The notes under the pieces are model-generated. The model was not told the DNA's origin. It ran no database searches and saw nothing but the letters and a program-made list of their open reading frames with translations. A stretch of 32,206 nucleotides of DNA, taken from contig MCFH01000130.1 in assembly GCA_002104945.1 (NCBI GenBank), positions 1-32,206 on the forward strand. Direction: 5' to 3'. Shown one piece after another: positions 1,827 through 32,206 of this stretch. The position numbers and the translations under genes were made by a program. How positions within the stretch are numbered: the stretch's first letter is position 1; each line of letters starts with the position of its first letter. This DNA is from Piromyces finnis finn (Eukaryota; Fungi; Neocallimastigomycota).

Positions 1827-1898
1827 AAAATCATAAAGGAAAAATAAAAAAAGCCGCGCCCCTCGAAAATAATAAAAATAGAAAAAATAAAAGATTAA

Positions 1899-7079: not shown

Positions 7080-7082
<3 letters not shown>

Positions 7083-8790: not shown

Positions 8791-8839
8791 CATTAATAAT
8801 TAATTAATAATTATTAAATAATAATTCTGATATTTTAAT

Positions 8840-9260
8840 TGATACGGGTTAATTTTATGTAGAAAGAATTAAACTTTAATTAATATATATATTTTATTAA
8901 TAATTTTATTTATAACGTTCCAATATTTCTATTCTGTCTAAATACTAAAACGTTCTGTCGTTGTCAAATATTAAAATTCTAACTAAAACAAGAAGCCCTT
9001 TTTAATAATATTTATTCTAGTCTATTTATACTAATGAGGCTTACTTAATAATTAATTGTCCAATTATAAGGCTGGAACTATATGGATCATTCATTTACAA
9101 TACTCTTTTACATTACATGATTTTACATTTGTCGTACATTTACATTATATTCTTATACATTGTAGAAATAATTAATATTATAATAAATCTATATAAATTT
9201 AATATTAGGAAAAATTACTAATATAATAATATGTTCAAGTCACATATTATTTTTATATCA
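8840..9260 (-). repeat. Gypsy-1 3' LTR
   Basis: TGATA...TATCA termini; identical by eye to 22605-23025. Confidence 0.96.
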
Positions 9261-9274
9261 AAAATCCCCTCGCT
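9261..9274 (-). other. Candidate polypurine tract of Gypsy-1
   Basis: AGCGAGGGGA then TTTT directly before the 3' LTR on the minus strand. Confidence 0.55.
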
Positions 9275-9422
9275 ATAGGAGAGCGAAGTATAATTTAAGA
9301 TACAAAATTTTTACTGAGCGTATCTGGTTATAATATTAATTTTTCTGGTTATAAAACTAAATTTCTAAAATTAAAAAAAATTGAAAAAAATTGAAAAAAA
9401 AATTGAAAAAAAAATACTAATA

Positions 9423-9461
<39 letters not shown>

Positions 9462-9769
9462 ATTATTATGATTAGTTATATATACTAATTACTAATTAAA
9501 CTAATTATTATTGTTATTATTATTATTATTTACTATTATTATAATTATTATTTATTATTATTCTCAATAATCTACGGTAGGCTACTCGAGGTTTAGCAAG
9601 GTCGAACAGGAGTTAATCGACTTTTCGAAATTTGAAATCCCTTTTTGACTTTTTCAATTTCAATTTCGAAATTTCAAATTAATTATTTTTTTTTTTTTTT
9701 TTATATATATATATGTTTAAACATATCTAATTTGTAAAATATCATAAATTTTAAATAAAGTGTCGTCTC

Positions 9770-11925: not shown

Positions 11926-11936
11926 TGTAATGAATA

Positions 11937-12646
11937 TGTTACGGTTCGAGGAATTTACTTTTATTTATAAAATATTAATAAATTTATTAATACTCAAAAA
12001 TAATATTAAAATGAAATAAGAAAAATTGTTTTATTAATAAAATTGTTTTATTAAGATATTAATATAAAATTATAAAATAAAATAAAAATAAAAATAAAAA
12101 TATCTGTATATTCTCTAATTCTTATAATATACACCTTTTTATACTTTTTGTAAAAAATTAAGTAGTGTTAATTAAAAGAATTAGTCTTTAATTATTTACA
12201 TAATTTTAGTATTTAAATTACTTTTAAATGAATAATAAAATTACATTACTATTATAATAAATATTTATACATATTATTAAATTGATTAACATACATTAAA
12301 AGTTTACTTTAAATATATTTAACTAAAAAATTTTACTATTTTACAGAAATATTATTCATAATTTTAATTAATAAAAATTCATTAACTTGATAAATTAAAC
12401 TAAAAGTTCAATAAACTATAATTTTCAATATATTATTATTACTAAATTAATTTTTAAGTTTAATAAAATAAAATTTAAGTTCAATAAAAAATAATTATTA
12501 ATAATTTTAAATATAATTTAAGTGTATACATTAATTTACAAATAAGAATATTGTAAAGTTTTCATACATTTAGGAACAATAATGAATGGATTAGGTCATA
12601 ATCATTAATTATGACAAGAATAACATTATTTGTTGGTTCCTTAACA
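11937..12646. mobile_element. 710-bp insertion, probable solo LTR of a third family
   Basis: TGTTA...TAACA termini, 4-bp TSD AATA (11933-11936, 12647-12650), non-coding. Confidence 0.85.
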
Positions 12647-12860
12647 AATACTAGAAATAACTAAATTGTCTTAGTGGTTAGTAGCTAAGACTTTGAGTCT
12701 GAATGACACTAGTTCGAGACCTCATAGATACTATTTTTAAAAAAATTATAATTTTATTTTATTTTATTTTATTTTTAAATTTTATTTTATATGAAGATTA
12801 TTGATTGGTTAAGAATTTTAAGTTGAAAAAATTTTATAAATTAATTTAAAAAATTTTTAG

Positions 12861-12868
12861 TATAAATA
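12861..12868 (+). promoter_or_regulatory. Candidate TATA box in Gypsy-2 LTR
   Basis: TATAAATA 40 nt upstream of 12901, the transcript start inferred from the self-priming complementarity. Confidence 0.5.
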
Positions 12869-13079
12869 CGAGTGAATTTTCCCAAATATTTTAAAGAATC
12901 GAGATTTTATTAATAAATAATTATATTATTAAACACTTAACTTATTAAGTTAAATTCTATGTGTTTTTAATGATATTTTTATAAATTAATAATTTACAGA
13001 ATATTTTAAAGTGTTAATATTACTAAGTTATTTAGTAAATATTATAATTTGTTTTATTGTTAAAGACACATTTCTTTAC

Positions 13080-13090
13080 AATAAAATCTC
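13080..13090 (+). other. Self-priming PBS of Gypsy-2
   Basis: AATAAAATCTC is the exact reverse complement of GAGATTTTATT at 12901-12911 in the LTR. No TGG tRNA-type PBS is present. Confidence 0.8.
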
Positions 13091-13970
13091 CTTATAATAT
13101 AAAAGCTTAATACCTTAGTGTTTAAGGAATTGTTATAGATAAAACTTTTAAGTTTTATTGTTGAAGCTTTTCTTTAAAGAAATATTTTTACTTAAAGTAG
13201 TAGAATTAGTACGCTTTAGAAGCGGTATATAATTCAAACTATAAAAAGTAAAAGATTAACGGGATCGAGTTTAACCTGTACAATAATTGGGTTGGCAGGC
13301 TCTGAGCTATTCTACTTTGAATAAGGAAGTAGGAGAATCCGAGGTACACCACGTACAAGACGCTGTAATAAGCAAGCTGGCGTGAGATTTATAGTTGTAT
13401 ACTATCTTTTGCTGTTTGATTATAGACCGGAAAATAGCCGGAAATGCCTTACTTTAATAAAATAATATTTCTTAATTAATACATTTTAAAATTAAGTTTT
13501 CTAATAAAACAATTTCTAATTTTTAATTATAATTATTAATTGTTAAGACAATTTATTAAAATTGTAATAATATAAAATAATATTCTTTATAACTCCTTTA
13601 GCGTGAGAAGTTAAACTCTTATACATAATACTTCTACGTTCGGATAAGGTTGATATAGGGAAAGAAAACCTGTAATAATTTTTATTGCTAACAATAAGTT
13701 AGACACTAAAAAAATTTTTACACCGTTCCTTTCTTTTATTAATTTAATTAATATTAACAATCGACTTTATACGTGTTATCGTGAAGAGCTACGAAGGACT
13801 TATTATAAAGAATAAAACAGGTTATATATTTGATGGTTTAACACTATATAATCTGGTTTATATTATTATTTAATAAAAAGATTTACTCAATTAATAAATA
13901 TAATTAAATACTTTATTCTATTATTTTTACAAACTTATTAAAGTTTATTAAAGAAAACATCATAAATACT

Positions 13971-16900
13971 ATGGAAGAGAACGAAAACAACCACATGGAT
14001 AATAATAATATTTTCGAAAACGCAACTCTTAAGGATGGTTTTGCAGGGGATCACAGGTATCTGAAGGGTTTCTTAGCTAAGGTGGAGCTAGTGTTTATGC
14101 TATATCCTGAACGGTATCAAGACGACGCAACCAAAATTCTCTATATAATATCAAGACTTTATGGGGACGCTATGAATTGGGCTGCTACTCTTATAAACAA
14201 CCATGATCCGTGTCTTAATAACTACCAAGCTTTTGTTGACAGGTTTAAGGCTTTTTATGGATATAACGATGCTACCTATGTTGCAAATCAAATGCTTAGA
14301 ACCTTAAAACAACGCCGATTAGGAGGAATTAGAGGCTATATCTTAGAATTTAACCGCTATGCTGATGAATCAAACTGGAATGAACAAGTCAAAATGGATG
14401 CATTTATAGCTGGCCTTAATCAACAAGTTGCCGTTCGTATTTTGGAAATGTTTCCGGGTCCTAGGGATCTTCTTTCATTACAGACTATTGCTTCAAGAAT
14501 CGATTCAAGATTATCTACACATCATACCTTTTTCCCTTCTGGTTCAAACAATGACCGAAACCGAAAGAAAAGATCTTTTCATCACTCTTCAAAAATAACA
14601 AAGTCCATTACAAACAGGAATAACCATGGCCCTATCTCAAACGAAGAAAAGGAAAGAAGAAAGAAAGAAAATCTTTGTGTGTATTGTGGTGCTTCAAGTC
14701 ATAAGCTTAATAATTGTCCAAAAAGAAAGAATAAAGATCGTGAAGATCCTTCACTAATATCTATTCCCACACTTATATCCGCTCCTAAAGAAGAAAACAA
14801 AACTCATAATAAAATGACAACTAAATTTAAACTTTCTTATGAACTAAATACGGATATTCTTATTGACTCAGGATCCAAACTTAATTTAATTGATGTAGAT
14901 TACTGTAACGATAATAACATTCCTTATCATGATGACGGTAACCTCCCAAATATCGTTGGTATCGGTGGTCGACAATCTCTTTTTGGAATTACATCTCCTT
15001 TGAATCTTCGCTACAAAGATCATCTCTGTCGAACACAATTCTATGTAACTGATCTACCTTATTATCCTTGTATTCTTGGAATAGACTGGCTTAAAGAACA
15101 CAATCCTTCTATCGATTTCACAAAGAACAAAATTTCATTTGTATCCGATTACTGTTATAATCGTTGTATAACACTCTCCAATAATGTCCCTGAATTTCCT
15201 GAAGAAAGATCTGCTTTTCCTGCAATGGAAGATCCTTCCTACGAACCTCCGCATGATTCATTCGCTTACCCTATATATGTCGATAAACAAAACATCCAAT
15301 CTCAAAACGAAACTAATCGTACTTGTACTATTCTCTGTTCGGGTTCTTCAAAAAATATTAACAATTCTGTTTCTAAGAAGTCTTCTGTTAACTTTTCTAC
15401 TTCGTCTCTCTCAAATCAAGAACCAACTTCTGTTTTGACTTCTTTTTCTGATTCTAATATTCAATCCAATTCTATTCTCAAATCCGATTCAAACTCTAAA
15501 TCAGAACCCAATTCTTCTATTATACTTCCGGATGTTCTCTCTGACTTTGCTGATGTCTTCAATGAATCTAATGCTGAAAAACTTCCTCCACACCGTCCAT
15601 ACGATTGTGAAATAAAACTCAAAGAAAATTCAAAACTGTTTTATGGACCGATTTATCCTCTAACAGAAACCGAATCAATTGCTTTAGAAGAATATATAAA
15701 AGAAAATCTCAAGAAAGGATTTATTAGAAAATCAAAATCGCCTGCGGGAGCTCCTATTCTGTTTGTACCTAAGAAAAACGGTCAACTTCGTATGTGTGTT
15801 GACTATCGCCAATTAAACTCCATAACTATTCGTGATTCTTATCCCCTTCCTCTTATACAAGATATGCTTGAACATCTTGGAAAAGGGAAGATTTTCTCAA
15901 AATTGGATCTTCGTTCTGCCCATAACTTGGTCAGGATTAAAAGTGGTGATGAATATAAAACCGCTTTTACTTGCAAGTTAGGTCATTTTGAATACTGTGT
16001 GATGCCTTTTGGGTTGAAAAATGCACCTGCTGTTTTTCAACATTTCATTAATGATGTTCTTGAAGACGTTCTTGGTAAATTCGCTTTCTTTTACATAGAT
16101 GATATTATTATTTTTTCCTCTGATTATAAATCTCATATATCTCATGTCAAAACTGTTTTGAAACACCTGAGGGATGTTGGGCTCTATGCTAAATTGGAAA
16201 AATGCGAGTTCTTTGTTTCTTTTATTGATTTCCTTGGTCATAGGATTTCTACTGATGGTATTCACATGGACCCAAATAAAGTTTCTTCTATTTTAAACTG
16301 GCCTACTCCATCTAATGTTAAAGAGGTTCAATCTTTTCTTGGTCTTGCGAACTACTACCGTCGATTTATTCCAAATTTTGCAAAGATCGCTCATCCTTTG
16401 CATAAACTTTTGAAGAAAAATGTTAAATTTGCATGGTCTAAAGAAGCTCAAGATGCTTTCGATTCACTCAAGTCCTTATTTATTTCTGCTCCTGTTCTTA
16501 TATTTCCTAATCGTGAACTTCCATTCATAGTCGAAACTGATTCAAGTAACTTTGCCATTGGTGCTATTCTCTCGCAAGTCTCTCCAATTGATAATATGAC
16601 CCATCCAGTTGCTTTCTTTTCTCGCTCTCTTACTGGTCCTGAACGTAATTATCCAATATATGATAAAGAGCTCTTAGCTATCGTTGCTGCTCTTGAAACA
16701 TGGCGTCATCTACTTAAAGGCTCTTATTCTACTTTTAAGATTTACTCGGATCATCGAAATTTACTCTATCAAAAGAAACCTGAAAAAATGTCTCAACGTC
16801 TTGTTCGCTGGGCTTTGTTTCTCTCTGAATTTAACTTTGTTATTATTTATCGTTCTGGTTCTTCTAACGGTAAGCCTGATACTCTATCTCGTCGTCCTGA

Positions 16901-18413
16901 TTATGCTATCAATTCGAATTCCTCTTCTGATGTTCCTTTTAATGTTCTTCGCCCTGAAAACTTTTGTGCCATTGTGACTTCTGTTTCGTCCATTAGTGAT
17001 TCTTTTCTTTCCGAATATATAAATGATGACTTTTACAATAAAATCTGTGAATATCTTGATTGTAGGAAACCTCCAATACCTCATCCTCAAATTGACAAAT
17101 TTTCCTTAAGCAATAGTTTTCTCCTTTTTACTGACAGAATCTATGTTCCTCCTAATTGTCGTCTTTCAATTCTTAAACTCTGTCACGACTCTCCTTCAGC
17201 TGGTCATTTCGGAATAAAGAAAACATCTTCTCTTATTGCTAGAGACTTCTGGTGGCCTTCTATTTCTTCTGATGTTAAAGACTACGTTCGTTCTTGTGAA
17301 GTTTGTTGTCGTTCAAAAACCTTTCGTCATAAACCTTATGGTCTTCTGAATCCTCTTGATATTGCTGAGCGTCCTTGGTCATCCATTTCAATGGATTTCA
17401 TTACAGATTTGCCTTCATCTTCTGGTTTCACTTGCATTCTTGTTGTTGTTGATCGTCTTACAAAAATGGTTCATCTCATTCCGTTCAAAAGTATTCCTTC
17501 CGCCGCCGAAACAGCCACAGCCTTTATTGATAATATTTTCCGTCTTCATGGCCTACCTGAATCTATTGTCTCGGATAGAGGTTCTCAATTTACCTCTAAA
17601 TTCTTCCAATCCATCTGTTCCTCCCTTGGCATTGAACTTAAGTTGTCTACTCCATTTCATCATCAATCAAACGGTCAGACGGAGAGGGTGAACTCCGTTA
17701 TAGAACAATATTTAAGATGTTTCTCAAATTATAAAGGTTCAAATTGGAAAAGTTTTCTTAGTCTTGCAGAATTTAGTTATAACAACGTGGTTCAAGAATC
17801 ATCCAAATTTTCTCCATTCTTTTTGAATTACGGCTTTCATCCAAAATATTCACCAGTTATTCCAGACTTATCTAAAGTCCCAAGAGCAGAAGAGTTTACA
17901 AGAGATTTTAAAACTTTAATTAATACCTTAAAAGAAAATTTAAAATCTGCCATGGAAACCCAGAAGAAGCATGCTGACAAACTTAGAAAAGAAGCTCCGA
18001 ATTTTAAAGTTGGTGACAAAGTTTGGCTGGATAGTTCTTTAATTATCCACAAAGGAAATAAAAAATTTAAGCCAAGAAAACTCGGCCCATACAAAATCTT
18101 GGAAAAAATATCAAATGTTACATTTAAATTAAGTCTCCCAAAATCTATTAAGATTCATCCAATTATTCATGTATCCAATCTCGAGAAATATGTCGAAGAT
18201 AAATTTGGAAGATCTCAACCGCCACCGCCACCTATTACCGTTGACAATGAAGAAGAATACGAAGTTGAAGAAATTCTGGATAAAAGAAGACATTACGGAA
18301 AAATACAATACCTGATTAAATGGAAAGGGTATTCAATCAATGAAGCTTCGTGGGATCCTGAAGAAAATCTAAATTGCAAGGGGCTACTTAAAAAATTTAA
18401 TAGAAAGAAATAA
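13971..18413 (+). CDS. pol: Gypsy-2 Gag-Pol polyprotein (capsid, CCHC-like knuckle, protease, RT, RNase H, integrase, chromodomain), 1480 aa
   Basis: [14 protein letters not shown]; LIDSGS; LRMCVDYR; [13 protein letters not shown]; YIDD; [10 protein letters not shown]; SDHRNL; GHFG..CEVC; MDFI, SDRG, QTER; LGPYKI; [23 protein letters not shown]. Confidence 0.97.
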
Positions 18414-18710
18414 AAAATAGTTAAAAAATTCAAATTATATTTATTATTAATATTAAAATCACAATTATTATTATTATCAAAACTTATTAATATCATTATC
18501 AATATCAATTTTATTATTAAACAATTTATTAATATCAAATTTATCAATATTTTATTTTTAACTTTAGTAATATTAAAAAAAAAAAATGTATTTTATTATA
18601 TTAAATGTATTTTTATAATTAAGAAAATTCACTCCTTAGTTTAGTTTATTAAAAAAGAAAAACATATATTTAAATATTAAAATTCTAGATTCGTCTGGTA
18701 TCCGAATCCT

Positions 18711-18720
18711 GGAGGAGGAC
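18711..18720 (+). other. Polypurine tract of Gypsy-2
   Basis: GGAGGAGGAC, 2 nt before the 3' LTR. Confidence 0.8.
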
Positions 18721-18722
18721 CA

Positions 18723-19163
18723 TGTAATGAATACTAGAAATAACTAAATTGTCTTAGTGGTTAGTAGCTAAGACTTTGAGTCTGAATGACACTAGTTCGA
18801 GACCTCATAGATACTATTTTTAAAAAAATTATAATTTTATTTTATTTTATTTTATTTTTAAATTTTATTTTATATGAAGATTATTGATTGGTTAAGAATT
18901 TTAAGTTGAAAAAATTTTATAAATTAATTTAAAAAATTTTTAGTATAAATACGAGTGAATTTTCCCAAATATTTTAAAGAATCGAGATTTTATTAATAAA
19001 TAATTATATTATTAAACACTTAACTTATTAAGTTAAATTCTATGTGTTTTTAATGATATTTTTATAAATTAATAATTTACAGAATATTTTAAAGTGTTAA
19101 TATTACTAAGTTATTTAGTAAATATTATAATTTGTTTTATTGTTAAAGACACATTTCTTTACA
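18723..19163 (+). repeat. Gypsy-2 3' LTR
   Basis: TGTAATG...CTTTACA, 441 bp. Confidence 0.96.
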
Positions 19164-21134
19164 AGAATAAATAATTATGTCATCAAGGTATACTTGAATA
19201 CAAACATTGAGGAGGTCAAAGAAGATACGATTCATCTCTCTTTGAAAGGTCGCCGGCGCGTTTGTTAAACCAAAAGGCATGACTACGTAATCAAAATTTC
19301 CAAAGCGCGTGGTAATAGCTGTAATACATTGGTCTTCTGGTAGCATAGGAATTTGGTGGTATCCACTGAATAGATCTAAGGCCGTGAAAAATCTTGCACC
19401 AGTCATGGATTCAAAAGCTTCTCTAATGTTGGGAATAGAGTAAGCATCCTTTACAGTAATATTATTGACTTTTCTATAATCTGCACAAAGACGCCATTTA
19501 TTGTGCTTCTTAGGAACCATTACAATGGGAGAAGCCCAAGGGGAATGGGATGGAACAATAAGGCCTTTATCCAGTAGTTTTTGAAGTTCACCCTTAAGAG
19601 CAGCTAGTTGAACTTGTGACAACTTCCGAACTTTAGCTTTAATGGGTTTAGCGCCCTCAACAAGTTCAATGTGGTGTGACCGGAGTTTTGAACGTTGGAG
19701 ATCATCAGTGGAACAAGCAATAACATCACGAAAAGAAAATAGAAGACTTTGAAAATCATCTACAACAATCGGTTCTTCAGACTTATATGAAGGAATAAGA
19801 TTATGTAATTCCTCAACTTTACCTAGAATTAAATCCTCCTTATTAAGAATAGGCTCGTTCTTGAGAGCAGCTACAATTGGTTTCCTATCAGAAGAGGGAA
19901 ATAAGTAACAGTAATAGCACAAAGAGTTAAAAGAATTAATATCAATAATAGGAGTGAGAGGTTCCAGAGTACCTTGACGTGTCTTAACACAAACAGTTTT
20001 ATCGACTGCATCAACAATAATCCGTTGATCATGTTGAACTTTCAAACCAATCAGAGCATCATAAAATACGTCGTCATTATCGCAAATGCGGAATAGGACC
20101 GGAAAGGTAAGAGAACCAATACACACATTGAGTTCAACCAAATCAAAGGTACGAAGGTTATCATCAGCCATAGCCTGTTGAATTTTGCTGTATACTTGGC
20201 CTTCAATTTTGAAATCGTTTATATTATCTAACAAGAATTTCCTCGAAACCAAGTTAATATTACTGCAGGAATCAACTAAAAGAAAAGCCTTATGTCCATT
20301 CAGTAAGGCATGAACTACGGCAATGTCGTGGTCTTTTACGGCACCCGACACATAGTCGTGATGAGGATTATTAACGACTTGTAGTTCCAGCGGCTTATTA
20401 TCCTGTTCGACCATACCCATGACAATAGAGCTAGAGGGAACACGTTCCTTCTTTAAGTTGTTGGCAAGATCCATACGAGATTGGTTGGATAATTCCAAGA
20501 GTTGGGCGAAAGTCACATTAGCCTTAGTATTTTTCAAGTCTTCGCAGATATCATATCTATTTGTCCCTTGAGATAACTTCATGACTTGTATAGTTTTCTC
20601 TTTTGGGCCTAAGGGCTGTACAAGTGCGCTTCCGATATTAGGAGAGGAAGTAATAGGACTTTTACTTTTCTTTTCACTTTTCGGCTTGGAAACATTTTTA
20701 AAAGATACAGATTTAACATGGCTCTCGGACTTACGGACATCTGGAGGTGCCTGAGTTTGTTCAAAATCCATTTCAACACTACTTACGTTTGGGAACGAGG
20801 GGGATTCGAACGCATGACCTGGGGACTGGGGGTTCGAGACAGTGCCCGCTGCACCATTGTGGTTATTTTCCTGAAAATTTTTTGAAGAGGGAAGATTCAC
20901 CTGGGGGTGTGCCTGAGATGGTTGTGAGCTCACCGGAGATGTAGGAGGAGGAGTAGTATCAGAATTCGAGGAGGTGAGCGAGTTGCGTCTCTTCGTTTGA
21001 GCTGATTCCTCCTCATCTGTAGGGTCTAATTTCCTTTTAGCTACAGCAATTATATCCTTTTTGACCGTAGATTCCGATGGTGAGTGACCCATTTGGTTAC
21101 TGGAGGTGGATCGACCTCCATTTAGTGATTTAAA
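19164..21134 (-). CDS. pol: Gypsy-1 pol, 5' part (S/P-rich linker, protease, RT up to YLDD), in the -1 frame relative to gag
   Basis: LLVDSCSNINL protease-like site; SPWASPIVMV, WRLCADYR, DLFSGYHQ, MPFGLTNAPATFQ, YLDDIIIYS. Rejoins 11925 as IYS-PSY once the TSD is removed. Confidence 0.94.
21086..21134 (-). promoter_or_regulatory. -1 programmed ribosomal frameshift signal (U UUA AAU plus stem/pseudoknot)
   Basis: Heptamer at 21134-21128 is in the correct gag frame. A 7-nt spacer precedes stem TGGAGGT/ACCTCCA (21120-21101); loop GATCC can pair with GGGTC (21090-21086). Confidence 0.8.
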
Positions 21135-22069
21135 CGACCACAGTCTTTTTGGAGGTGTCCTGGTTGATGGCAGCGATAACACACTTTTTGGGAAAAGTTA
21201 CCAGACGCATGAGGGGTATTCCTAGGCTGAGTGTAAGATGAATTATACCTGTTTTGATACTGATTTGGAGGATTATAAGCAGGATAAGGAGTGTAATATT
21301 CAGATTGATGATAAGTGGCATAACCATCACCCATTGGTGCAGGAGGCCTGTTGTTGAAATAAGGATCTGAGTAACTAGGTCCAGGAGCTTGGACAGGAGC
21401 AACCGGTGTTGAAGGATAATTGTAACTGGAATTATTGGAATATCCATAAGAATAAGGGTTAGGATTGGAATAATGACTATCCATCGGACGATACTGTGGT
21501 GTATAAGCACCATGAGGATTATAACCAGGAGTAAAGCTACTGGAATAAGAGGCGTATTCTTTCCAGTATTCGTGGTTCTTTGCAGTTTGGCAAGCCTCAT
21601 CAATAGTTGCGGGCTCGCGAATGGTGAGGGCATGTTGTAATTCTGGACGACTACGGATAGCATGCATATAGTCGTACACAGAAACTCTGGGGCGATATTC
21701 CGCATCCAAAGAATGGTAAAGGTCCAAAAACCTATTATTGAATTCATCCACTGTTTCTCCAGGACGAATAACCATAATCTTTAATCGGCGAAAACCATCC
21801 TGTTTGTTGTTCCAATAGGCTAACCTATTCCTAATTGATGGCATACATTCATCCAAAGAGGGTGGCCTGTTCCACATGCGTTCAAACCTAATTAGTTCAT
21901 CAACAATTTCTGGGAAATCGATACAACCGACAATGGTATCGAACTTTTCATTCTCATCAACAATGCCTTCTCTAGAAAACCATGCTTCCATCTGACGTTT
22001 CCACACATCTTCGTTGCAATGGGTTTTGTCCAAGATAGGAAGTCTATAATACGAAGATCTATTAGCCAT
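21122..22069 (-). CDS. gag: Gypsy-1 Gag (315 aa) with CCHC zinc knuckle
   Basis: ETVDEFNNRF major-homology-like segment; CYRCHQPGHLQKDC. Confidence 0.92.
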   Translation of the reverse strand: MANRSSYYRLPILDKTHCNEDVWKRQMEAWFSREGIVDENEKFDTIVGCIDFPEIVDELIRFERMWNRPPSLDECMPSIRNRLAYWNNKQDGFRRLKIMVIRPGETVDEFNNRFLDLYHSLDAEYRPRVSVYDYMHAIRSRPELQHALTIREPATIDEACQTAKNHEYWKEYASYSSSFTPGYNPHGAYTPQYRPMDSHYSNPNPYSYGYSNNSSYNYPSTPVAPVQAPGPSYSDPYFNNRPPAPMGDGYATYHQSEYYTPYPAYNPPNQYQNRYNSSYTQPRNTPHASGNFSQKVCYRCHQPGHLQKDCGRLNH

Positions 22070-22117
22070 AGCAAAAATTTACTGAAATTTAAAGGGTTAG
22101 GTATTAATGAGTAAACA

Positions 22118-22167
<50 letters not shown>

Positions 22168-22582
22168 ATTTAACTGAAAATAATATAACAAACTAATTAT
22201 TTAATATATTTTATTTATCAAGTTTAGTTTTCGACCTCCACTTCGGGCCCTCACTAATAAATACTTTATTCTAACAGTGGGTTAGAATGGTGATATTTCT
22301 TTAATAGCTGCCGGAAGCGCTCTACTCTCCTAATGAATATTTAAGAACTGATATGGTAGTTACCAACTCTTAAATAACCTCAATAAATAACTGGAGTAAA
22401 TATACTAAACTTTAATAATTTATACGCAAGCGTTGTAGCTGTCTAGTATAAACTACTTAATTATATTATATTATTAAAAGAATAACAACTTTTTATATCC
22501 TTTTCTACTTCTAAGTAGTAAAGGAGGAAAATAACAATAAAACTTGTTTTAAAAATCGAAAAAAAAAAACACTATTCTTTCT

Positions 22583-22601
22583 ATCCCCGATATCTCCACC
22601 A
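22583..22601 (-). other. Gypsy-1 primer binding site complementary to the tRNA-Ala 3' end
   Basis: The + strand reads ATCCCCGATATCTCCACCA, like eukaryotic tRNA-Ala ...ATCCCCGGCATCTCCACCA; 3 nt from the LTR. Confidence 0.8.
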
Positions 22602-22604
22602 AGT

Positions 22605-23025
22605 TGATACGGGTTAATTTTATGTAGAAAGAATTAAACTTTAATTAATATATATATTTTATTAATAATTTTATTTATAACGTTCCAATATTTCTATTCT
22701 GTCTAAATACTAAAACGTTCTGTCGTTGTCAAATATTAAAATTCTAACTAAAACAAGAAGCCCTTTTTAATAATATTTATTCTAGTCTATTTATACTAAT
22801 GAGGCTTACTTAATAATTAATTGTCCAATTATAAGGCTGGAACTATATGGATCATTCATTTACAATACTCTTTTACATTACATGATTTTACATTTGTCGT
22901 ACATTTACATTATATTCTTATACATTGTAGAAATAATTAATATTATAATAAATCTATATAAATTTAATATTAGGAAAAATTACTAATATAATAATATGTT
23001 CAAGTCACATATTATTTTTATATCA
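22605..23025 (-). repeat. Gypsy-1 5' LTR
   Basis: 421 bp, identical by eye to 8840-9260, adjacent to the PBS. Confidence 0.96.
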
Positions 23026-23461
23026 TAATGAAAAGATTATTTGTTAATTTTACTATATAAATTTATGAAATAATTTAGATAAATATTTAAATTAATGAAT
23101 AATTAAATTTAAATATTTTAAGCATTCAAATTAAATCTTAAAAAGTTTTTATTTAATTAAAATTAGTTTAAAACTTCAAAGTCAAAGTAGTTTTAAAATA
23201 GCATTTTTCAATAGTAATTATATAATAAATAGTATTATTAATATTAAATTAATATAGAAGTAATACATGGACTATATTCAATTTACAGTTTACTCAAATT
23301 GAATCAAAAGTGTATCTAATTAGTTTTAGTATAGGTTTATTATTTTATTATTTATTTAAATTAGTATTAAATTAGATTGGTTTATTTTATATTAAATATG
23401 TATATAATTAAATAGATATATCAAATTATAATATATAAAAAATATAAATACATGTAATTTT

Positions 23462-24095
23462 TCTTAATAAAAACGATGTAATTGTTATTGACTACAATTT
23501 ATTTAATAACTAAGTTCACACAAAGGTAAAAACACTATTCTGTCTGAGAAGACGAACAATAACATCTAAGGTATTGTTCAATGACAGCATTAGTAAGCTC
23601 AATTTGTCCGTTGGATTGTTGATGATGAGCAGTAGCAAGATTTGGTTTGACTCTAAGAGCAAAGCAAAAAGAAGTTCAAAATTCAGAAGAGAATTGAGAG
23701 CCGTGATCGGAGATAATGGTTTTAGGAAAACCATGATAACGAAAAACATTTGAAAGGAGGAGTCTAGCTGTGAGATCAGCCGAAGCAATGAATTAAATGG
23801 ATCATCTTTGTAAGGTGATAAGCGACCACCATAATACATGTACAATTTTGAGAATTTTGGAGAGAAACTATGAAATCCATCCCAATGATTTCCCACGGTT
23901 TATTTGGTACAGGAAGTGGCTGGATTTTTCCGTAAGGTTTGTGGCGGCGTATTTTGTTTTTTCCACAAACCTCACATGAAAAAACGTAGTTTTGTACGTC
24001 ATTACGCATATTTGGCCACCAATAATAACGTTTTAGTTTTTCAAGGGTTTTATCAACCCCCTGATGACTATTGTTTATTAAATAATCTAAAGATA
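23462..24095 (-). pseudogene. Degenerate Ty3/gypsy integrase remnant (related to Gypsy-2 type)
   Basis: HQGVDKT..WWPNMRNDVQNYVFSCEVC..HKPYG..PWEIIGMDFI; then SDHGSQF and QSNGQIE..IEQYLRC across frameshifts and stops. Confidence 0.88.
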
Positions 24096-24102
24096 TATAT
24101 TA

Positions 24103-24506
24103 TGATACGGGTTAATTTTATGTAGAAAGAATTAAACTTTAAATAATATATGTTTTATTAATAATTCTATTTATTACGTTCCAATATTTCTATTCTGTCT
24201 AAATACTAAAACGTTCTGTCTTTGTCAAATATTAAAATTCTAACTAAAACAAGAAGCCCTTTTTAATAATATTTATTCTAGTCTATTTATACTAATGAGA
24301 TTTACTTAATAACTAATTGTCCAATTATAAGGCTGGAACTATATGGATCATTCATTTACATTATTCTTTTACATTTGTCGTACATTTGCATTACATTCTT
24401 ATACATTGTAGAAATAATTAAAATTATAATAAAACTATATAAATTTAATATTAGGAAAAATTACTAATATAATAATATGTTCAATTCACATATTATTATT
24501 ATATCA
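24103..24506 (-). repeat. Diverged solo LTR of the Gypsy-1 family
   Basis: TGATACGGG...ATATCA, 404 bp, substitutions and deletions relative to the 421-bp LTRs, 4-bp TSD ATTA (24099-24102, 24507-24510). Confidence 0.93.
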
Positions 24507-25174
24507 ATTATATCTTTACAATATTATTAATACAAAATTAAATTTTATAATATATATGTACAATATACAATCAAAAACAATATCATTACAAGTAATAAAT
24601 AATATTTTAGATTATTTAATATATGATAATGTTTAATAAGCTTATTTAAATTTTTCTTATTAGATTATAAAACAAGCTTTTATGACTTATATTCTATGAA
24701 GATTCTATTAAACTTATATTAAATAATAAAGTTATCATTTTAGTAAATATTACTATTATTAAAAGCATTTTTTTTAATTATAGTAATTTATTTTACATAC
24801 ATAATACACTATGTAATTTATTAATTTTTATTATGAAACTTTTAGTGTTGTGTAAATATTTTTGATACTAACTTTTTTTTGAAAGTATTATTTTATTAAG
24901 CTTTACATTTAGTATACTATTAAATTACTATATTATTTCTTAGTAAAATTATTCTTAAAACTTAAAAAAACTATTTTATAGAATAGTATTGTACTAGTCC
25001 TTATATTTCTCAGAAATGATTTACTCAATTTTATATATATATTAGGATTACGATTGTAAATTGTAATATAAAGCATATTCGATTTATAATTTTTTTATTT
25101 CTTTAGCATTTATAAATCATATAAAATGAAAATTTAATAAAATCTAAATAATAATTCTAACTATTTAAATATTT

Positions 25175-25234
25175 AATAATCCTAGTTTTATTTACTTTTA
25201 ATTTGAATTAAAAGTAAATAAAACTAGGATTATT
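25175..25234 (-). terminator. Perfect 28-bp stem / 4-nt loop hairpin over the stop codon of the 731-aa ORF (candidate viral 3'-end signal)
   Basis: AATAATCCTAGTTTTATTTACTTTTAAT-TTGA-ATTAAAAGTAAATAAAACTAGGATTATT; stop codon at 25208-25210. The palindrome is certain; its function is inferred. Confidence 0.7.
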
Positions 25235-27403
25235 TTTTAAAGATTTATATATTGTACCATCTATACTTCTATTTAATAATAGATAAGGTTTATTAGGAAA
25301 ACTATCTTGAAGTTTTATATTTGTAGCTTGACATGGATAATATATATTATCTTTCCATACACCAAATACCACAACTTCTTTTTCATTTATGTTTTTAAAG
25401 TAATGATATCCTGAAATCTCTTTAATTTCCTTATATAAAGTTGAATATGGAGGTAAGGTGTCATTAAATATATCTTCATTAATTATTGGAATTTCCGGCA
25501 ATATATTAGAATATGTAGACTTCCATAAATAATACTTTTTATTAGAATCATCTGATATTTTTTTCTCTGCTATCAAAATAACTTTATCTTCTTCTGAGAT
25601 AAATTGTGAAATATATGAATCTCTATTGTTTTCATCAATAATAATTATGTTATTTTTTTTGTACATTGATAATATTGCTTGTACAAATACATCGTTAACG
25701 AAAAATAAATTAGTTTCTGGTTTTACTATATATTCATATCTATAATTTGGACGAAGGTATAACCTAGTAGTGTTCATCATAACAATTATGAATGGATATG
25801 AAGAATTAAAATTATAAACGAAATTATTTACTCCATATGGATATATCTTCATTTCATTATCTACGGAAAATGATAATATATTTATATTGGTATAACTACT
25901 TTCCATTTTTAATATATTTAATTGTTTATTTAAAAACTTTTCTTTTAATATGTTTAGAAAGTGTTGCTGAGATGGGATATTTATATAAGTACTACATTTA
26001 GAACATATTTTAAATTTCGAAAATATTTCTTCAATGTCAAAATAAATTCTATATAAATTTGGTAATTCATACCCATAAGAAATAAATAAGTTTGATGGTA
26101 ATAAACCAATAGATTGTTCAACAATATTATACGATATATTAGTAAAAATAATCTTTTTTTTACTTTTAGCTTTTTTAATAGTTTTAACGCATTTAGGAAT
26201 TCCAGGATTATCACCAGACCTTCTATTTTGATTTATAGTTATTGTGTACCCAGAGCCCTCTGGAGATTTATAATAATTATTATTCCATTGAACATAAGGA
26301 ATATTGTGTTTGATACAATATTCTTTATCAGCAATAACAGGATAAACTTTATCGACATTCCTATAATATCTTGTATAAAATTTCCCAAATAATCTATTAT
26401 AATTTATTTTTATAGGTATTTTAAAGAATAAAGTTTTATTTTGAAAATAATTTATATGGAAATTAATATATAATAAATAAATATAGTTTAACAGAATTTT
26501 TACTGATAAATACATATACCATTCTAGATTTTTAATATGAATTGTTTCATTATATTGTTTATGTTTATTATATAAAAATATATCTATTGAAGTATTAAAT
26601 AAGTTTAAAGAATACACTAAACTTTCTTGTTTTTTTATTAAACCACTTTTTTCATTTGTATAAAGATAGGGATATAAATTATTTTCATATAACATTAAAT
26701 CAAATAATTGAAAATCAATTGATATCGGGTATATTAATGTTATATCTGATGGAATAAATCTTATAAAAGTATTATCAATTGAACAATTTAAGAATGGTAA
26801 TAATAAGTAAATAATGTTAGAATATGATTCTTTATCTGAAAAAGTAATTTTGGATTTTGTAATTTGTATTACATCATGACAACATTTAATAATAATATAA
26901 TTATCTACATTTTCAAGTTTTCTAAGTCTATCAAATCTTATTAATTCTTGGTTATATGAAAATGAATCAATAAAATATTTATTTACATATTGAAAATGCT
27001 GTATACCTTGTATAAAACTTGCTATATATTGGCAATTATCAGGTAAATTTTGAGTAATTATTTTTTCATATGTTTCTTTAAAACTAATTGAGGGTAAATT
27101 AATTGGAATATAGTATTTTGTTTTAGTTGTATCTTCTAAATAATATTTATATTTTATAGGTTCATTTTTTATTTTTTTTTCTAAATTATCATAAAGTGAA
27201 AATAATAATGATACTTTTTTTATATCTACATTAGAATTATCCTTATACTTTACTATATATTTTTCTTTGGATAATTCATTACAATCAATAATATTAATTC
27301 CTTCAAAAAAAGAAAATACTTCATTATTAATTAATATTTCAAGTTGATATGGTAGGGCTTTGTATTTTTCTAATATTGTACGTATTAAATTTATTATATC
27401 CAT
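25208..27403 (-). CDS. 731-aa intronless protein resembling the NCLDV/poxvirus early transcription factor large subunit (A7/VETF-L family)
   Basis: Motif order recalled for VETF-L: FYTRY..YPVI, YYKSP..N..GIPKCVKT (PCC-like), GLLPSNLF..YR, NILSF, YEYIV, QFISEEDK, VFGV. Length is close to poxvirus A7. Remote, by-eye similarity. Confidence 0.6.
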   Translation of the reverse strand: MDIINLIRTILEKYKALPYQLEILINNEVFSFFEGINIIDCNELSKEKYIVKYKDNSNVDIKKVSLLFSLYDNLEKKIKNEPIKYKYYLEDTTKTKYYIPINLPSISFKETYEKIITQNLPDNCQYIASFIQGIQHFQYVNKYFIDSFSYNQELIRFDRLRKLENVDNYIIIKCCHDVIQITKSKITFSDKESYSNIIYLLLPFLNCSIDNTFIRFIPSDITLIYPISIDFQLFDLMLYENNLYPYLYTNEKSGLIKKQESLVYSLNLFNTSIDIFLYNKHKQYNETIHIKNLEWYMYLSVKILLNYIYLLYINFHINYFQNKTLFFKIPIKINYNRLFGKFYTRYYRNVDKVYPVIADKEYCIKHNIPYVQWNNNYYKSPEGSGYTITINQNRRSGDNPGIPKCVKTIKKAKSKKKIIFTNISYNIVEQSIGLLPSNLFISYGYELPNLYRIYFDIEEIFSKFKICSKCSTYINIPSQQHFLNILKEKFLNKQLNILKMESSYTNINILSFSVDNEMKIYPYGVNNFVYNFNSSYPFIIVMMNTTRLYLRPNYRYEYIVKPETNLFFVNDVFVQAILSMYKKNNIIIIDENNRDSYISQFISEEDKVILIAEKKISDDSNKKYYLWKSTYSNILPEIPIINEDIFNDTLPPYSTLYKEIKEISGYHYFKNINEKEVVVFGVWKDNIYYPCQATNIKLQDSFPNKPYLLLNRSIDGTIYKSLKNNPSFIYF

Positions 27404-27844
27404 TTTGATTTTAGTTCAATTCTTTACTATATAATTAATATTTTCTAATTCACAAAATATATATTTTTTGTAAATTTATTCTAAACAAAAATTTAATATA
27501 TAATTTATAATTTGATAGGATAATAAAAAATTGTTAATATGAATTTAATAACTTTAATTGTGATAGTATCAGAATTTAATTAGTTAAAATTTGGGTTTTT
27601 AATATTTACTATATTTATAGTAATTTATTATTACGAAGTATTACAAATATGTATATATATAGCTTATACTACATTATTAATACATTATTAATACATTATG
27701 TTAAATGTATTAAAGATTATTAGAATATTTAATTTTATTATAAATCTTAAATATATTCAATTAATTAAAGTTTATAATAAAATTAAGAAATTCTAAAAAT
27801 CCTCAAACCTGATTTCATTATGAAATTCAATGTTTGATGTATAA

Positions 27845-27978
27845 ATAAAATAAAATAAAATAAAATAAAATAAAATAAAATAAAATAAAATAAAATAAAA
27901 TAAAATAAAATAAAATAAAATAAAATAAATAAAATAAAATAAAATAAAATAAAATAAAATAAAATAAAATAAAATAAA
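27845..27978 (+). repeat. (TAAAA)n microsatellite, ~26 units
   Basis: Directly visible; generates the spurious ILFYF ORFs. Confidence 0.97.
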
Positions 27979-29269
27979 CGGAACATAATTTTAATGAAAA
28001 TAATAGAAATAAATATATGGAGATGATATTTTTTTTTCTTCTTGAACGTAATTTAAGTCTTTTATAATTAATTCGTAAAATCACTATCATTTAAACCTTA
28101 ATTTTCGGATATAGATTCTTTGATAATAAATTGGAATACATTAATTCTAAAATATATGAAGACTTTAGGGTTAATATGATGACACCATTAAGTCTTGACT
28201 AGTTGTCTTGGTAAGAATGGATTGTTGAATTAAATCTTCAAATCTAATTTTGATGCTATTATTAATATTTGGTTCACAGGTACCTATTACATTTTCTTCA
28301 CTGCCTGTTGTTATGATTCTTTATTTGGATATTGATACCAGATTTTGTCAATTATATTCTTCTTATTGATTTTTGTTGATATCTTTTGAAAATAGGACTT
28401 TATCTAAAATATCTCAGTAGCATTAACCCATGGATTGTACCATAACCTTCAAATATACATAAAGATTTGTTTTTCAATATTATCGACAAAATGTCCGAAC
28501 ATTGTATTAATTTTTTCGAAGTACGAGCCATTTGTACAAGCTTTAAAGTTTTTCCATCTTTTCCTATGCAGATTAGGTTATTATAATATTAAATTCTTAT
28601 AATATTTATTATATAATTTATATCACATGAAATACCATATCATATGATAAATTATGTATATATTAATGTGAATAAACAATTATACCTAGGCCACCATAAA
28701 TAAAATCTAAATGCCACATTGAATTTTTTAACATTAATTAGTACATTATATTAATAAATAAGGTTATATACTTTATTTAATTTTATAAAAAATATTAATT
28801 TTAAATTATTAATCAAATTTATTAAATAAACACATAAAATAATTCAAAATAATCATATAACAACGTGACCAAAACTTATTGAGGCGTAAACATTTCACAA
28901 GATAAAAAAAAATTAAGTGAAAAAACACAAATTTATTTTATTAATTTAAAATTTAAATAATTATAATGTAAATTATGTTATGTAAATAATTTCTTTTATT
29001 TATATTTATATTTATATTATTATATTTTTATTATACTTTAATAAATATTTTTATATTTTTTATATTAGTTTTATATAGATTGTTAATTAAATAAATAAAG
29101 AAAATATATATATTTTTATTTCATGTATTTATTTTTTAGCTTATTTTATAATTAACTGTCGAAGTAATATTTTTATTAATAAATTAATTTTAACTATTAA
29201 TAGATTTAATTATTCCTAAAAAGGAAAATATATGTGATTTATTAAATTTAAATAAATATATTATTTTAA

Positions 29270-30720
29270 TTTATTAATAAACTTTATATATTATAAAAAA
29301 ACATTATTAAAAAATGACCAAATTTTGAATATCTTTTTATAAGTAAAATAACTAGATTTATTTATTTGAATTTAAGGCATGATATATACTTTATTAATTA
29401 TTTTAATTAAATTATATTATTATATTCATAAGGAATTTTATGACTATAATAATATTTATGTTTATTACATTTTCTATTTTTATTTATTAATAAACAAACA
29501 AACTAAAATTTAACTACTTAGTTTATTTGTTTATTTATATGAATTTAATTTTAACAAAAATTTTAATATATCCATAAATTGATGGATGATATACATATTT
29601 GAAAAAATTAATTTATTTTATATTAGTATAAAATAAATTAATATACTAATTAATCTTATGTATTATAAAAATATAAAAACCCAAAATATAACTTTTGAAT
29701 TTTTCTTGTAGTAAATAATTGACTAAGTTTATTTATTTAAATTTTTAAGAAAATATAGTATTAAAAATATTTTATCATATTCCTTACTTTTATTTAATTA
29801 ATTATTTATGTTTTATATATTTTCTACTTTTTTATACGAAGATTTAATTATTAAGTTTATTTACATATTTCTTACTTTATGAATTGATTCTAGACAAAAA
29901 TTTAATATATCCATAAATTGATAGGATAATAAACAATTAAAACATTTAATATAGTAATAAACTTTATATATTATAAAATATTTTAAAAGAAAAAGTTCAG
30001 AATAACTTTAAATTTTCTTTCGTAATAGATAATTGATTCAGTTTATTCCGTTTATGTTCAAATTTTTATGAAATGATTCTAGACAATAAAAAATTAATAT
30101 ATCTATAATTTGATAGGATAATGAATAATAAAATAATTAATATAGTATTAAACCTTGTATTTTATAAATACTATTAAAGAAAAGTCCATAATAACTTTTA
30201 AGTTTTCTTTTGTCATTTATTCAAATTTATAAGATATTTTATAATTTTTATTTATTAATTATTTTAATGCAAATTATATTATTATATTCCTAAAATATTT
30301 TATTTTACTTCCTACATTCTTTTATTTAATTATATTTATTATATTTTCTCTTTTTTATACGAAAATCCAACTATTAAGTTTATTTGCATGTTTCATACTT
30401 TATAAATTGATTCTAGACAAAATTGATAGGATAATACGCAATTAAAACAATTAATATAGTAATAAACCTTATGTATTATAAATATTATAAAGGAAAAGTC
30501 TAAAATAACTTTAAGTTTTCTTTTTGTAATAGATAATTGACTCGGTTCATTTATTTAATTTTATATGAATTGATTCTAGACAAAAATTTAATATATCCAT
30601 AAATTGATAGGATAATAAACAATTAAAAAATTAATTAATATATTAACTTAAAATGAAGTAAAGACTATAAAAGAAAAGTCAAAAACAATTCCGAGTTTTT
30701 ATATTTTTTAGTAAACAACT
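29270..30720 (+). repeat. Degenerate tandem array of ~160-190-bp AT-rich modules with a ~500-525-bp higher-order period
   Basis: GATTCTAGAC at 29886, 30075, 30409, 30572; TGATAGGATAAT at 29919, 30111, 30424, 30605; decayed units near 29275 and 29545; second module duplicated at ~29780 and ~30306. Confidence 0.85.
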
Positions 30721-30885
30721 TTTTAAAGTAAAATAATATAATTCGGTTCTTTTATTCAGATTATAGGATTTTATCTTGTTAGGTTTAATCATAATATTTA
30801 TACTAAAATTTAATTGTTAATTTTATTTCCTTATATCTAAAATAATTTACTAAATAAGTTTATTTCTTCCTTTTGCCTAAAACTT

Positions 30886-30924
30886 TCATCATCATCATCA
30901 TCATCATAATAATAATAATAATAA
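30886..30924 (+). repeat. Compound microsatellite (TCA)7(TAA)6, 12 nt before the helicase ATG
   Basis: Directly visible. Confidence 0.9.
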
Positions 30925-30936
30925 TTAGTTTTTATT

Positions 30937-32206
30937 ATGTCTTATCCCGATATTAATAAATTATATAACTATCGAGAATTTAAAGAAATATTTACTAATG
31001 AAAATTTATTGGAGGAAAAACTCCATATGAAAAGATATCAAATATTACCTTCTAGGTATATGTCGAGTGATAATGAAGCTGTTAAAAGATTTTTAATCTA
31101 CCATCCACCGGGTTCAGGAAAGTCATATACTGCATTATGGATACTGCTAAACTTTATAAATTTTTATGAAAAACCAGCTATTATCCTTGTAAAGAATAAA
31201 GAATCGATAATAAATTTTAAAAGTCGTATTGAATCATGGTATTCATTTACATTTAACTTTAATAAACCTCCAGAAGGTATAACAAATTATCAACAATTTA
31301 TAAAAAAATATATTGAATTTTATACATATTTTTCATTTTTCAAATCTATAAAAAATATAGAGGATATTAAAATGCATGAAAATAGATTTATTATTATTGA
31401 TGAGATACATAATTTTCGAAATACTAAAGAAAATAAATTATATATAAAAGAATTAATAAATTCTTAAGTTCTATTAAAAATGCAAGAGTAATATTTATGT
31501 CAGCAACACCGATATTTGATAACTATAATGAAATATCAAGTTTAATAAAATTAATAGTACCAACTATTAATAATAATACTGATTTTACTCCCAAAAAAGT
31601 AGAAGAAATAATGAAAGGACACGTATCATATTATGGATTAAATCCGCCAGATACAATTGTTAATTATAATGGTAAGTGTATTCAAGGAATTAATAAATAT
31701 AAAATATTTGAAATTCCTATGAAAGGATTCCAACTTCAATATTACCAAAATTTAACCAAAAATGTTAAGAATTTAAATAGTATGGAATGGGAATTAATTT
31801 AACGAAAGCAGCTATTGGTGTTATTGATTTTAATAATTTTAAATTAAATATTCCCCATGATACCTAATAATGAAAAAAAACGTTATATATTCAAAAATGG
31901 TCATATCATTTATAATGATATAGAAATTCAAAAAACTATAATAAAGCATTCAGAAAACCTCAGTGATTATTGTTGTAAATTTTACCATTGTCTAGATATT
32001 ATTAATAAGGCTAATTCATCAGATGGTCTTGTTTTTATATATTGTAATTTAATAGAAGATATCGGTATATATTATTTTGCAGCACTACTTTGCTCTATGG
32101 GATATAATTATGTATATGATAATAAATCAGCAAAGCGATTTAGTAAAAAAAAATTTTTAGATAAAGAATTTGATTACCCAGAATTAAAAGAAATAAGAAG
32201 AGGTAA
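30937..32206 (+). CDS. SF2 DExH helicase/NTPase of the poxvirus D6/D11 (VETF small subunit / NPH-I) family; 3 single-base indels, truncated by window end
   Basis: Motif I LIYHPPGSGKS, motif II IIIDEIHNF, motif III MSATP..NEISSLIKL, GHVSYY, then LSDYCCKF..GLVFIY..G....LCSMGY from 31857. Indels at ~31460, ~31795, ~31855. Confidence 0.82.

Follow-up and report, generated by a model that had tools for sequence, protein, structure and literature searches.

The window analysed here, a 32,206-nt stretch of DNA (contig MCFH01000130.1) from the anaerobic gut fungus Piromyces finnis, ends in 7 kb of extremely A+T-rich sequence that holds two genes, a complete open reading frame (ORF) of 731 codons and the 5′ part of a helicase gene. 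We interpret this segment as an endogenous fragment of an element resembling the nucleocytoplasmic large DNA viruses (NCLDVs), carrying a homologue of the viral early transcription factor's large subunit (VETF-L) as well as a helicase of the poxvirus D6/D11 type, and we assign this interpretation a probability of roughly 0.8. An initial annotation, made from the sequence alone, had described two genes diverging around a repeat array in A+T-rich DNA, the larger of them intact, beside a graveyard of transposable elements. Our ORF calls and a G+C content of 0.11–0.23 across 24–32 kb confirmed this layout. The two genes lie on opposite strands with 3.5 kb of non-coding DNA between them, the 731-codon ORF has no internal stop, and nested Ty3/gypsy elements fill ~3–23 kb of the window, together with three copies of long terminal repeats (LTRs). 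At the ORF's own base composition, 731 stop-free codons would arise by chance with a probability of ~1e-33, and the longest stop-free stretch in 500 shuffles of the ORF was 113 codons.

The VETF-L-like protein and the D6/D11-type helicase

A word-based search returned 16 homologues of the 731-aa protein at 44–62% identity, from Piromyces finnis (seven), Piromyces sp. E2, Neocallimastix and, for the remainder, metagenomes. An exhaustive profile search over 1.84 billion representatives gave 38 proteins only, apparently members or fragments of the same family; the named ones were from Neocallimastigomycota, the others were unnamed metagenome or run-assembly proteins, and no known NCLDV VETF-L was reached. 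The protein and 11 relatives (12 family members in all) matched no Pfam family at E ≤ 10, and the family sequence matched neither the curated Pfam model of the poxvirus VETF large subunit nor the solved VETF-l. Searches of PDB sequences, with the single sequence (phmmer) or with a profile, likewise gave no match for the 731-aa protein, and an exact look-up of its sequence found no record. A locus search with the VETF-L alignment found nothing in prokaryotic genome contigs or IMG/VR viral contigs.

The link to VETF-L came from structure prediction. We built an AlphaFold2 model of the 731-aa protein from a 12-sequence alignment (pLDDT 65.6, pTM 0.54) and compared it with the PDB by Foldseek, where the top match was 7amv_K (E 1e-5, probability 1.0, 763 columns), a chain of 708 residues from the vaccinia early pre-initiation complex and the only PDB fold match at E ≤ 1e-3. 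Domain cores of TATA-box-binding protein (TBP) took most of ranks 2–33 (E 4e-3 to 0.07, probability up to 0.99), indicating a TBP-like domain in the 731-aa protein. Vaccinia VETF-l is known to contain a TBP-like domain and to work at early promoters alongside VETF-s and Rap94, and entry 7AMV is that complex (PMC12917281). We took 7amv_K to be the large subunit because the length of chain K and the names of the BFVD matches agree; chain W of the entry is labelled VETFS by its depositors.

In BFVD, the model had 58 matches at E ≤ 1e-3, and nearly all of the named ones were early transcription factor large subunits. The leading matches were Tunisvirus (1.9e-15), Pithovirus LCPAC001 (2.5e-14) and invertebrate iridescent virus 6 (IIV-6) 295L (1.2e-12), joined by several pithoviruses, Orpheovirus, African swine fever virus (ASFV) G1340L and the entomopoxvirus and vaccinia 82-kDa subunits; a viral TATA-box-binding protein was also among the matches. 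The fold alignments to 7amv_K and to the NCLDV VETF-L models were whole-length, at 763–1080 columns. The modelled fold thus supports homology between the 731-aa protein and the large subunits of NCLDV early transcription factors (poxvirus A7-like), and the corresponding proposal of the initial annotation was upheld by fold, not by sequence. Its remark on a pox-like size also proved apt: the predicted VETF-L structures of Marseilleviridae, Pithoviridae, Iridoviridae and Asfarviridae gave the strongest fold matches, but most non-pox BFVD matches are 975–1496 aa long, whereas the fungal family measures 728–738 aa.

The first part of the window helicase matched the Pfam models ResIII (3e-12), DEAD and SNF2-related, and window positions 30940–32198 matched residues 13–430 of the 1006-aa helicase of relatives at 50–69% identity. 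A second version of the locus, on P. finnis contig MCFH01000025.1, has the helicase open over 1004 codons with ResIII, DEAD, SNF2-rel_dom and Helicase_C, and thus with both lobes (ResIII/DEAD and Helicase_C) of the superfamily 2 (SF2) ATPase core. Relative to that version, the window helicase shows one substitution and three frameshifting one-base indels that break its reading frame and are either strain differences or assembly indel errors. Because random errors could not produce a 1004-codon ORF at 20% G+C, the open helicase is real in at least one sequenced version.

Vaccinia NPH-I (D11) was matched by the first piece of the window helicase at 1.5e-4 and by a full-length relative at 8.3e-18. 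A 17-member helicase profile matched NPH-I/D11 at 5.5e-41 and VETF-s/D6 (7amv_W) at 7.4e-28 over nearly its whole length, versus 4.4e-8 at best for cellular SNF2 proteins. For a model of the 1004-aa relative (pLDDT 69.5), the best fold match was 7amv_W (VETF-s; 9.3e-16, 715 columns), followed by NPH-I chains (8.5e-14 to 2.4e-12) and then by Chd1/ISWI, the seven best matches being VETF-s and NPH-I chains. Profile and fold both support a place for the helicase in the pox-type D6/D11 clade, and not among cellular SNF2/ERCC3 proteins, in agreement with the initial annotation. Of the two outcomes that the annotation had named as refuting its reading, one for each protein, neither occurred.

Vaccinia VETF supplies the best solved folds for both proteins (7amv_K and 7amv_W), with large subunits of similar size (708 versus 731 aa) and shared TBP-like signals. 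The two systems differ in that identity is ~11% with no sequence-profile link for the large subunit, in that the fungal helicase is ~370 residues longer than VETF-s and scores better against NPH-I by sequence, and in that a Rap94/TFIIB-like partner was not identified in the fungal element. Since the compact relatives described below carry one such helicase only, it would be the sole candidate partner for the VETF-L-like protein. By analogy with vaccinia, the two proteins may work as a VETF-like heterodimer, for which we see about even odds. The earlier suggestion that both VETF subunits lie side by side was therefore sustained in part: the genes are adjacent and the pairing is plausible, but the helicase is not assignable to D6 over D11.

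Compact relatives and their upstream motif

Counterparts of both window genes belong to a conserved block that recurs across many run assemblies as well as in P. finnis and Neocallimastix sp. 'constans', in the order 282-aa gene, helicase, 268-aa gene, TFIIS, VETF-L, Rpb1 C-part, PolB, 145-aa gene, 194-aa gene, D5 primase-helicase and Rpb2. The gene set beyond the VETF-L block was gathered by walking along Logan contigs, which added an 808-aa capping-enzyme-like protein (a weak mRNA_cap_C match and a methyltransferase domain) and the Rpb1 N-part. The relatives thus encode VETF-L together with a virus-type RNA polymerase, a capping enzyme and a D6/D11 helicase, and the window locus retains the helicase and the Rpb1 N-part of their block. 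The compact unit has 19 genes, ~87% coding density and ~23% G+C. Its other proteins include one of 207 aa (UDG) with ≥90% identity to P. finnis proteins that bear the name DNA glycosylase, three of 469, 1526 and 723 aa, and one of ~1720 aa with a C-terminal chitin-binding domain. The initial annotation had proposed a scan of other contigs for virus hallmark genes, and PolB, RNA polymerase and the capping-enzyme-like protein were found in the relatives, but the major capsid protein and the A32 packaging ATPase were not recognised: in a sequence-level search the ~42.4-kb units gave no Pfam capsid or A32 match at E ≤ 1, and no compact-unit protein besides D5 contained a Walker A motif.

Different runs yielded contigs of 42,285, 42,384, 42,391 and 42,416 bp that share one gene set but not their start points. 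The 469-aa gene lies at 10.6, 21.6 or 28.9 kb among these contigs, and one of them starts and ends inside one chitin-binding gene. Because contigs of equal length start at different points, the map is circular, which may reflect a circle, a genome that is linear but circularly permuted, or units arrayed head to tail. A ~30-kb variant corresponds to the compact unit minus ~12.5 kb, a stretch that begins within the 1526-aa gene and reaches as far as the 227-aa gene's end; its representative SRR14695932_120 (29,954 bp; positions 1–5200) is without most of the 1526-aa, 723-aa and chitin-binding genes, and the rest is 96–99.9% identical. Four neighbouring proteins of the compact unit (723, 1526, 227 and ~1720 aa) have signal-peptide-like N-termini, and the ~1720-aa protein combines its terminal Chitin_bind_1 domain with a weak B_lectin match.

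Members of the family are numerous in several anaerobic fungi. The P. finnis genome contains no fewer than eight VETF-L loci, and several of these are intact. A VETF-L cluster of N. 'constans' and N. lanati has 80 members at ≥90% identity, including in N. 'constans' dozens of intact 736-aa copies on separate 36–110-kb contigs and a few on contigs of 0.3–0.8 Mb, a pattern that speaks for recent amplification on a massive scale or for an element of high copy number. Helicase and Rpb2 copies are likewise numerous in N. lanati, N. 'constans', Anaeromyces and Orpinomyces. A metagenome scan with an Rpb2 fragment gave three short contigs only, and as far as the databases show the element family is confined to Neocallimastigomycota. 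A distant VETF-L homologue (24–28% identity) was found in a 1018-codon open frame of Neocallimastix californiae (MCOG01000334.1:9977-13030), where the annotated product is 563 aa; this frame represents a second, longer lineage of the VETF-L gene in anaerobic fungi.

From these observations we tentatively propose that the family persists in anaerobic gut fungi as a free, circular or circularly permuted replicon of ~42.4 kb and 19 genes. Such a replicon would have kept the NCLDV-type core for replication and transcription in full, with PolB, D5, UDG, a split Rpb1, Rpb2, TFIIS, capping enzyme, VETF-L and one helicase. In place of a recognisable capsid and packaging ATPase, it would carry a 12.5-kb block that is dispensable and encodes secreted proteins, including a chitin-binding one. 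We regard this proposal as somewhat short of an even bet.

Many of the 110-nt regions upstream of the compact-unit genes share a motif. TAAAATGA was present in 9 of the 19 regions versus 0.28 expected, and AAATGAT in 11 of them. TAAAATGA(T) and AAATGAT lie mostly 45–95 nt before the ATG, including those of the VETF-L, helicase, TFIIS, D5 and Rpb1 C genes, and the N. 'constans' lineage keeps the motif before VETF-L and Rpb1 C. In style the motif is an A/T-rich core centred on TG, and it may resemble the early-promoter cores to which VETF binds in poxviruses. We consider a model in which the window segment is a chromosomal copy of part of an NCLDV-like element and holds its promoter-recognition module, which would consist of the compact 731-aa VETF-L-type protein with its TBP-like domain and of the element's only D6/D11-type SF2 helicase. 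If the vaccinia early pre-initiation complex is a guide, VETF-L and the helicase of the compact form would bind the A/T-rich motif TAAAATGA(T) upstream of many of its genes and would then load the element's own multisubunit RNA polymerase, the transcripts of which may receive their caps from the capping enzyme that the element itself encodes.

The chromosomal copy and its rearrangement

Window positions 20935–32206 matched contig MCFH01000025.1 (749,539 bp) of the P. finnis assembly GCA_002104945.1 at 99.68% identity over 11.3 kb, with 12 substitutions and 23 small indels, none of them in the 731-codon ORF. The two versions of the locus agree on the junctions with Ty3 LTRs over this length, and the match to a 749-kb P. 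finnis contig together with the Ty3 flanks supports integration in a fungal chromosome, as had been assumed at the outset. Indels outnumber substitutions between the two versions, which fits a different assembly or uncorrected indel errors. Past the window end, the same locus on MCFH01000025.1 continues with a family-conserved 148-aa ORF and with a 721-aa Rpb1 N-part that is likewise open. Between the helicase and the 148-aa ORF there is a further ORF of 188 aa (15571–16137 of the MCFH01000025.1 piece, in which 1–11274 corresponds to window 20935–32206); the public gene model over it has a weak glutaredoxin match, but by itself this ORF matches no Pfam family.

Compared with the compact unit, the chromosomal helicase is inverted relative to VETF-L, the 268-aa gene and TFIIS that lie between them elsewhere are missing, and so is the Rpb1 C-part that follows VETF-L elsewhere. 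The Rpb1 N-part has moved to the helicase side, and spacers of ~0.15 kb in the compact unit compare with 3.5–4 kb in the chromosomal copy. No remnants of TFIIS, the 268-aa gene, the Rpb1 C-part, PolB or D5 were found at E ≤ 1e-2 in window 22–32 kb. Because it is rearranged, has lost genes and is without the upstream motif, the chromosomal locus cannot act as a complete element. The positions of the features in the window and of the compact-unit sequences are listed in Table 1.

Table 1. Features of the window and sequences of the compact relatives
Feature	Position or sequence	Strand	Remarks
VETF-L-like ORF	25208-27403	-	731 aa, ATG to stop, internal stops 0
TBP-like region of the VETF-L-like ORF (residues ~90-320)	26444-27136	-	approximate, bounds inferred; repeated strand/helix pattern in model
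D6/D11-type SF2 helicase, 5′ part (~420 of 1004 codons)	30937-32206	+	continues past window end
Perfect inverted repeat, 29+29 nt, 2-nt centre	25175-25234		RNA fold -37.7 kcal/mol
Isolated repeat core	27465-27531	+	60-130 nt upstream of VETF-L ORF start, points away from ORF
(AAATA)27 microsatellite	27843-27978		in spacer
Degenerate repeat array	29237-30720	+	~2.5 copies of ~500-bp unit, 64-79% identity
Ty3/gypsy element	8839-23028	-	LTRs 8839-9263 and 22604-23028, 99.8% identical
Second, intact Ty3, nested in the 8839-23028 element	13971-18413	+	1480-aa gag-pol with chromodomain
Older LTR copy	24103-24506		92% identical to 22604-23028
Compact-unit Logan contigs (~42.3-42.5 kb)	SRR25667310_978, SRR25667315_2293, SRR25667292_290, SRR25667323_331
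Signal-peptide-like gene block	SRR25667292_290:2475-9815; SRR25667323_331:1-2133

The element-derived sequence stops at the VETF-L stop codon, exactly at the centre of a palindrome whose inner arm is formed by the last codons and stop of the VETF-L-like ORF and whose outer arm is their mirror image. Position 25175, where the initial annotation had let the segment start, belongs to this outer arm. This palindrome is present in both versions of the locus and probably marks the left edge of the element-derived DNA, beyond which the older LTR copy is the nearest retrotransposon sequence. It looks like a fold-back scar at a breakpoint, although it may alternatively be a local 3′-end hairpin. No comparable hairpin was found at the end of the VETF-L gene in relatives, and a family-wide 3′-end terminator was rejected, as the palindrome is unique to the window locus and absent at the gene ends of relatives.

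In the spacer between the two genes, a repeat core of ~60–90 nt is present in about five copies from 29.5 to 30.7 kb, embedded in higher-order units of ~500 bp. The cores contain AAATTGAT, all on the plus strand and in the same direction as the helicase, and a 15-nt core occurs seven times in the window versus 0.75 expected. AAATTGAT is a one-letter variant of the upstream motif and is carried six times by the array, all on the plus strand; a relation between the two is suggestive at most. We rejected the repeat core as a conserved family signal, since the exact core is absent from 12 related loci, and the spacer DNA of the window had no specific match in these 12 loci. A patch of the spacer at 28090–28600 has higher G+C and complexity and contains only short ORFs (≤55 aa); it had no match to any gene of the relatives.

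As for the rest of the window, the Ty3/gypsy element at 8839–23028 is young, judged by the identity of its LTRs. No tRNA genes or Rfam families were found in the window, and its sequence contains no N.

Known systems, alternative explanations and significance

Endogenous NCLDV-like elements of these fungi have been described before. Gong, Zhang and Han (2020, Virus Evol., PMC7017919) probed fungal genomes with PolB and reported 'fundsalphaviruses' in P. finnis, Piromyces sp. E2, Neocallimastix californiae, Anaeromyces robustus, Pecoramyces and others, with D5, a D6/D11-like SNF2 helicase, a S-adenosylmethionine (SAM) methyltransferase, RPB2, RPB5 and RPB1 N/C as six shared genes, a PolB placed next to Pithovirus, and retrotransposons near the insertions. 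With the same hosts, shared genes and adjoining retrotransposons in a Neocallimastigomycota genome, the window locus is one such insertion, and the fundsalphavirus genes D5, helicase, methyltransferase, RPB2, RPB1 N/C and PolB are all present in the VETF-L-bearing relatives. The ranking of the BFVD fold matches is in line with the published PolB placement. The idea of an undescribed lineage, raised in the initial annotation, consequently did not hold, though the published elements were described without VETF-L; the compact units, circular map, deletion variant and upstream motif are not described in that study either (PMC7017919). We found no other paper using the name 'fundsalphavirus', and a literature search of incomplete coverage found none on VETF-L or compact complete units in anaerobic fungi and none that cites the SRA runs of the unit contigs. 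Both the assignment of VETF-L and the ~42-kb units thus seem to be new. Mycodnaviridae, the giant viruses that occur in zoosporic fungi as infections and as insertions (PMC13533422), are likewise of NCLDV type and associated with early-diverging fungi, but the elements here are ~42 kb and not giant, and the Mycodnaviridae paper makes no mention of Neocallimastigomycota, anaerobic fungi, pithoviruses or Pimascovirales.

Several points weigh against our interpretation of the segment. No sequence method ties the 731-aa protein to VETF-L, its model is of medium confidence, and the TM-scores of its fold matches are 0.28–0.35, low though expected for a multidomain protein. The helicase is nearer to NPH-I/D11 by sequence and marginally nearer to VETF-s/D6 by fold, with a longer alignment. 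The 160 nt preceding each of the two window genes do not include the upstream motif, and the circular map of the 42-kb relatives could also arise from head-to-tail chromosomal arrays. The low TM-scores would also suit a TBP-domain protein of other function, for example an intermediate or late factor, in an element that is still NCLDV-like, and poxviruses do have more than one TBP-like factor (VITF-3l; PMC12917281). We consider this very unlikely, as the alignments to 7amv_K and the VETF-L models extend well beyond the TBP-like part and VITF-3 chains are not among the listed PDB fold matches. A different challenge comes from the preservation of the locus. The VETF-L, helicase, Rpb1 N-part and 148-aa ORFs, all four of the element-derived ORFs, are open in the MCFH01000025.1 version even though 7% of single-base changes in the VETF-L ORF would introduce a stop, which indicates recent insertion or selection, and these ORFs may be expressed. 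The fragment could then be old and consist of exapted host genes, kept open by selection for a host function such as interference with incoming related elements; the divergence of the spacer repeats to 64–79%, the scrambled gene order, the loss of neighbouring genes and the multiple VETF-L loci of P. finnis would all fit. The diverged repeats hint at the age of the insertion but may have come with the donor element and hence do not date it, and the window's own version of the helicase is frameshifted, so that we judge exaptation unlikely.

The stand-alone assembly of related units as circularly permuted ~42.4-kb contigs, and the dozens of intact copies on 36–110-kb contigs in Neocallimastix sp. 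'constans', raise the question of whether the segment is integrated at all or is free, episomal element DNA that the assembler misjoined to chromosomal DNA. Such a misjoin is highly improbable in view of the Ty3 LTR junctions shared by both versions over 11.3 kb, the broken gene order and expanded spacers relative to the compact units, and the 749-kb length of the matching contig. An integrated cytoplasmic linear plasmid of the pGKL2 type, also mentioned in the initial annotation, would share the logic of an own RNA polymerase, capping enzyme and D11-like helicase with the fungal units. Yeast killer plasmids encode a secreted chitin-binding toxin precursor, which the predicted secreted proteins of the relatives recall, one of them with a chitin-binding domain and their block lost in the shorter variant. 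The fungal units, however, carry D5 primase-helicase, TFIIS, UDG and VETF-L, which pGKL2-type plasmids are not known to carry, and neither a terminal protein nor terminal inverted repeats were seen in them. Their equal-length contigs are circularly permuted and not linear with fixed ends, and PolB was placed next to Pithovirus by Gong et al. (PMC7017919). The plasmid alternative thus does not fit, and we hold it to be extremely unlikely.

As an endogenous fragment of an NCLDV-like element, the window supplements the fungal insertions already described with a core gene that had been missing, VETF-L, here in an unusually compact version of pox-like size. This gene was missed by sequence profiles and found by structure prediction, which is of relevance to surveys in which viral regions are scored by their marker genes. 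The ~42-kb units recur intact in many independent sequencing runs. If they are indeed a free replicon, its genome would be smaller than any other of NCLDV type by a wide margin, giving such genomes a new lower bound, and the units would represent a natural minimal set for cytoplasm-style transcription. The replicon would then also be a possible link between giant viruses and killer-plasmid-like cytoplasmic elements, a much-debated relationship that could then be tested on descriptive data, and would be a first candidate for a DNA element of such a kind in the anaerobic gut fungi, a group of interest to research on fibre degradation.

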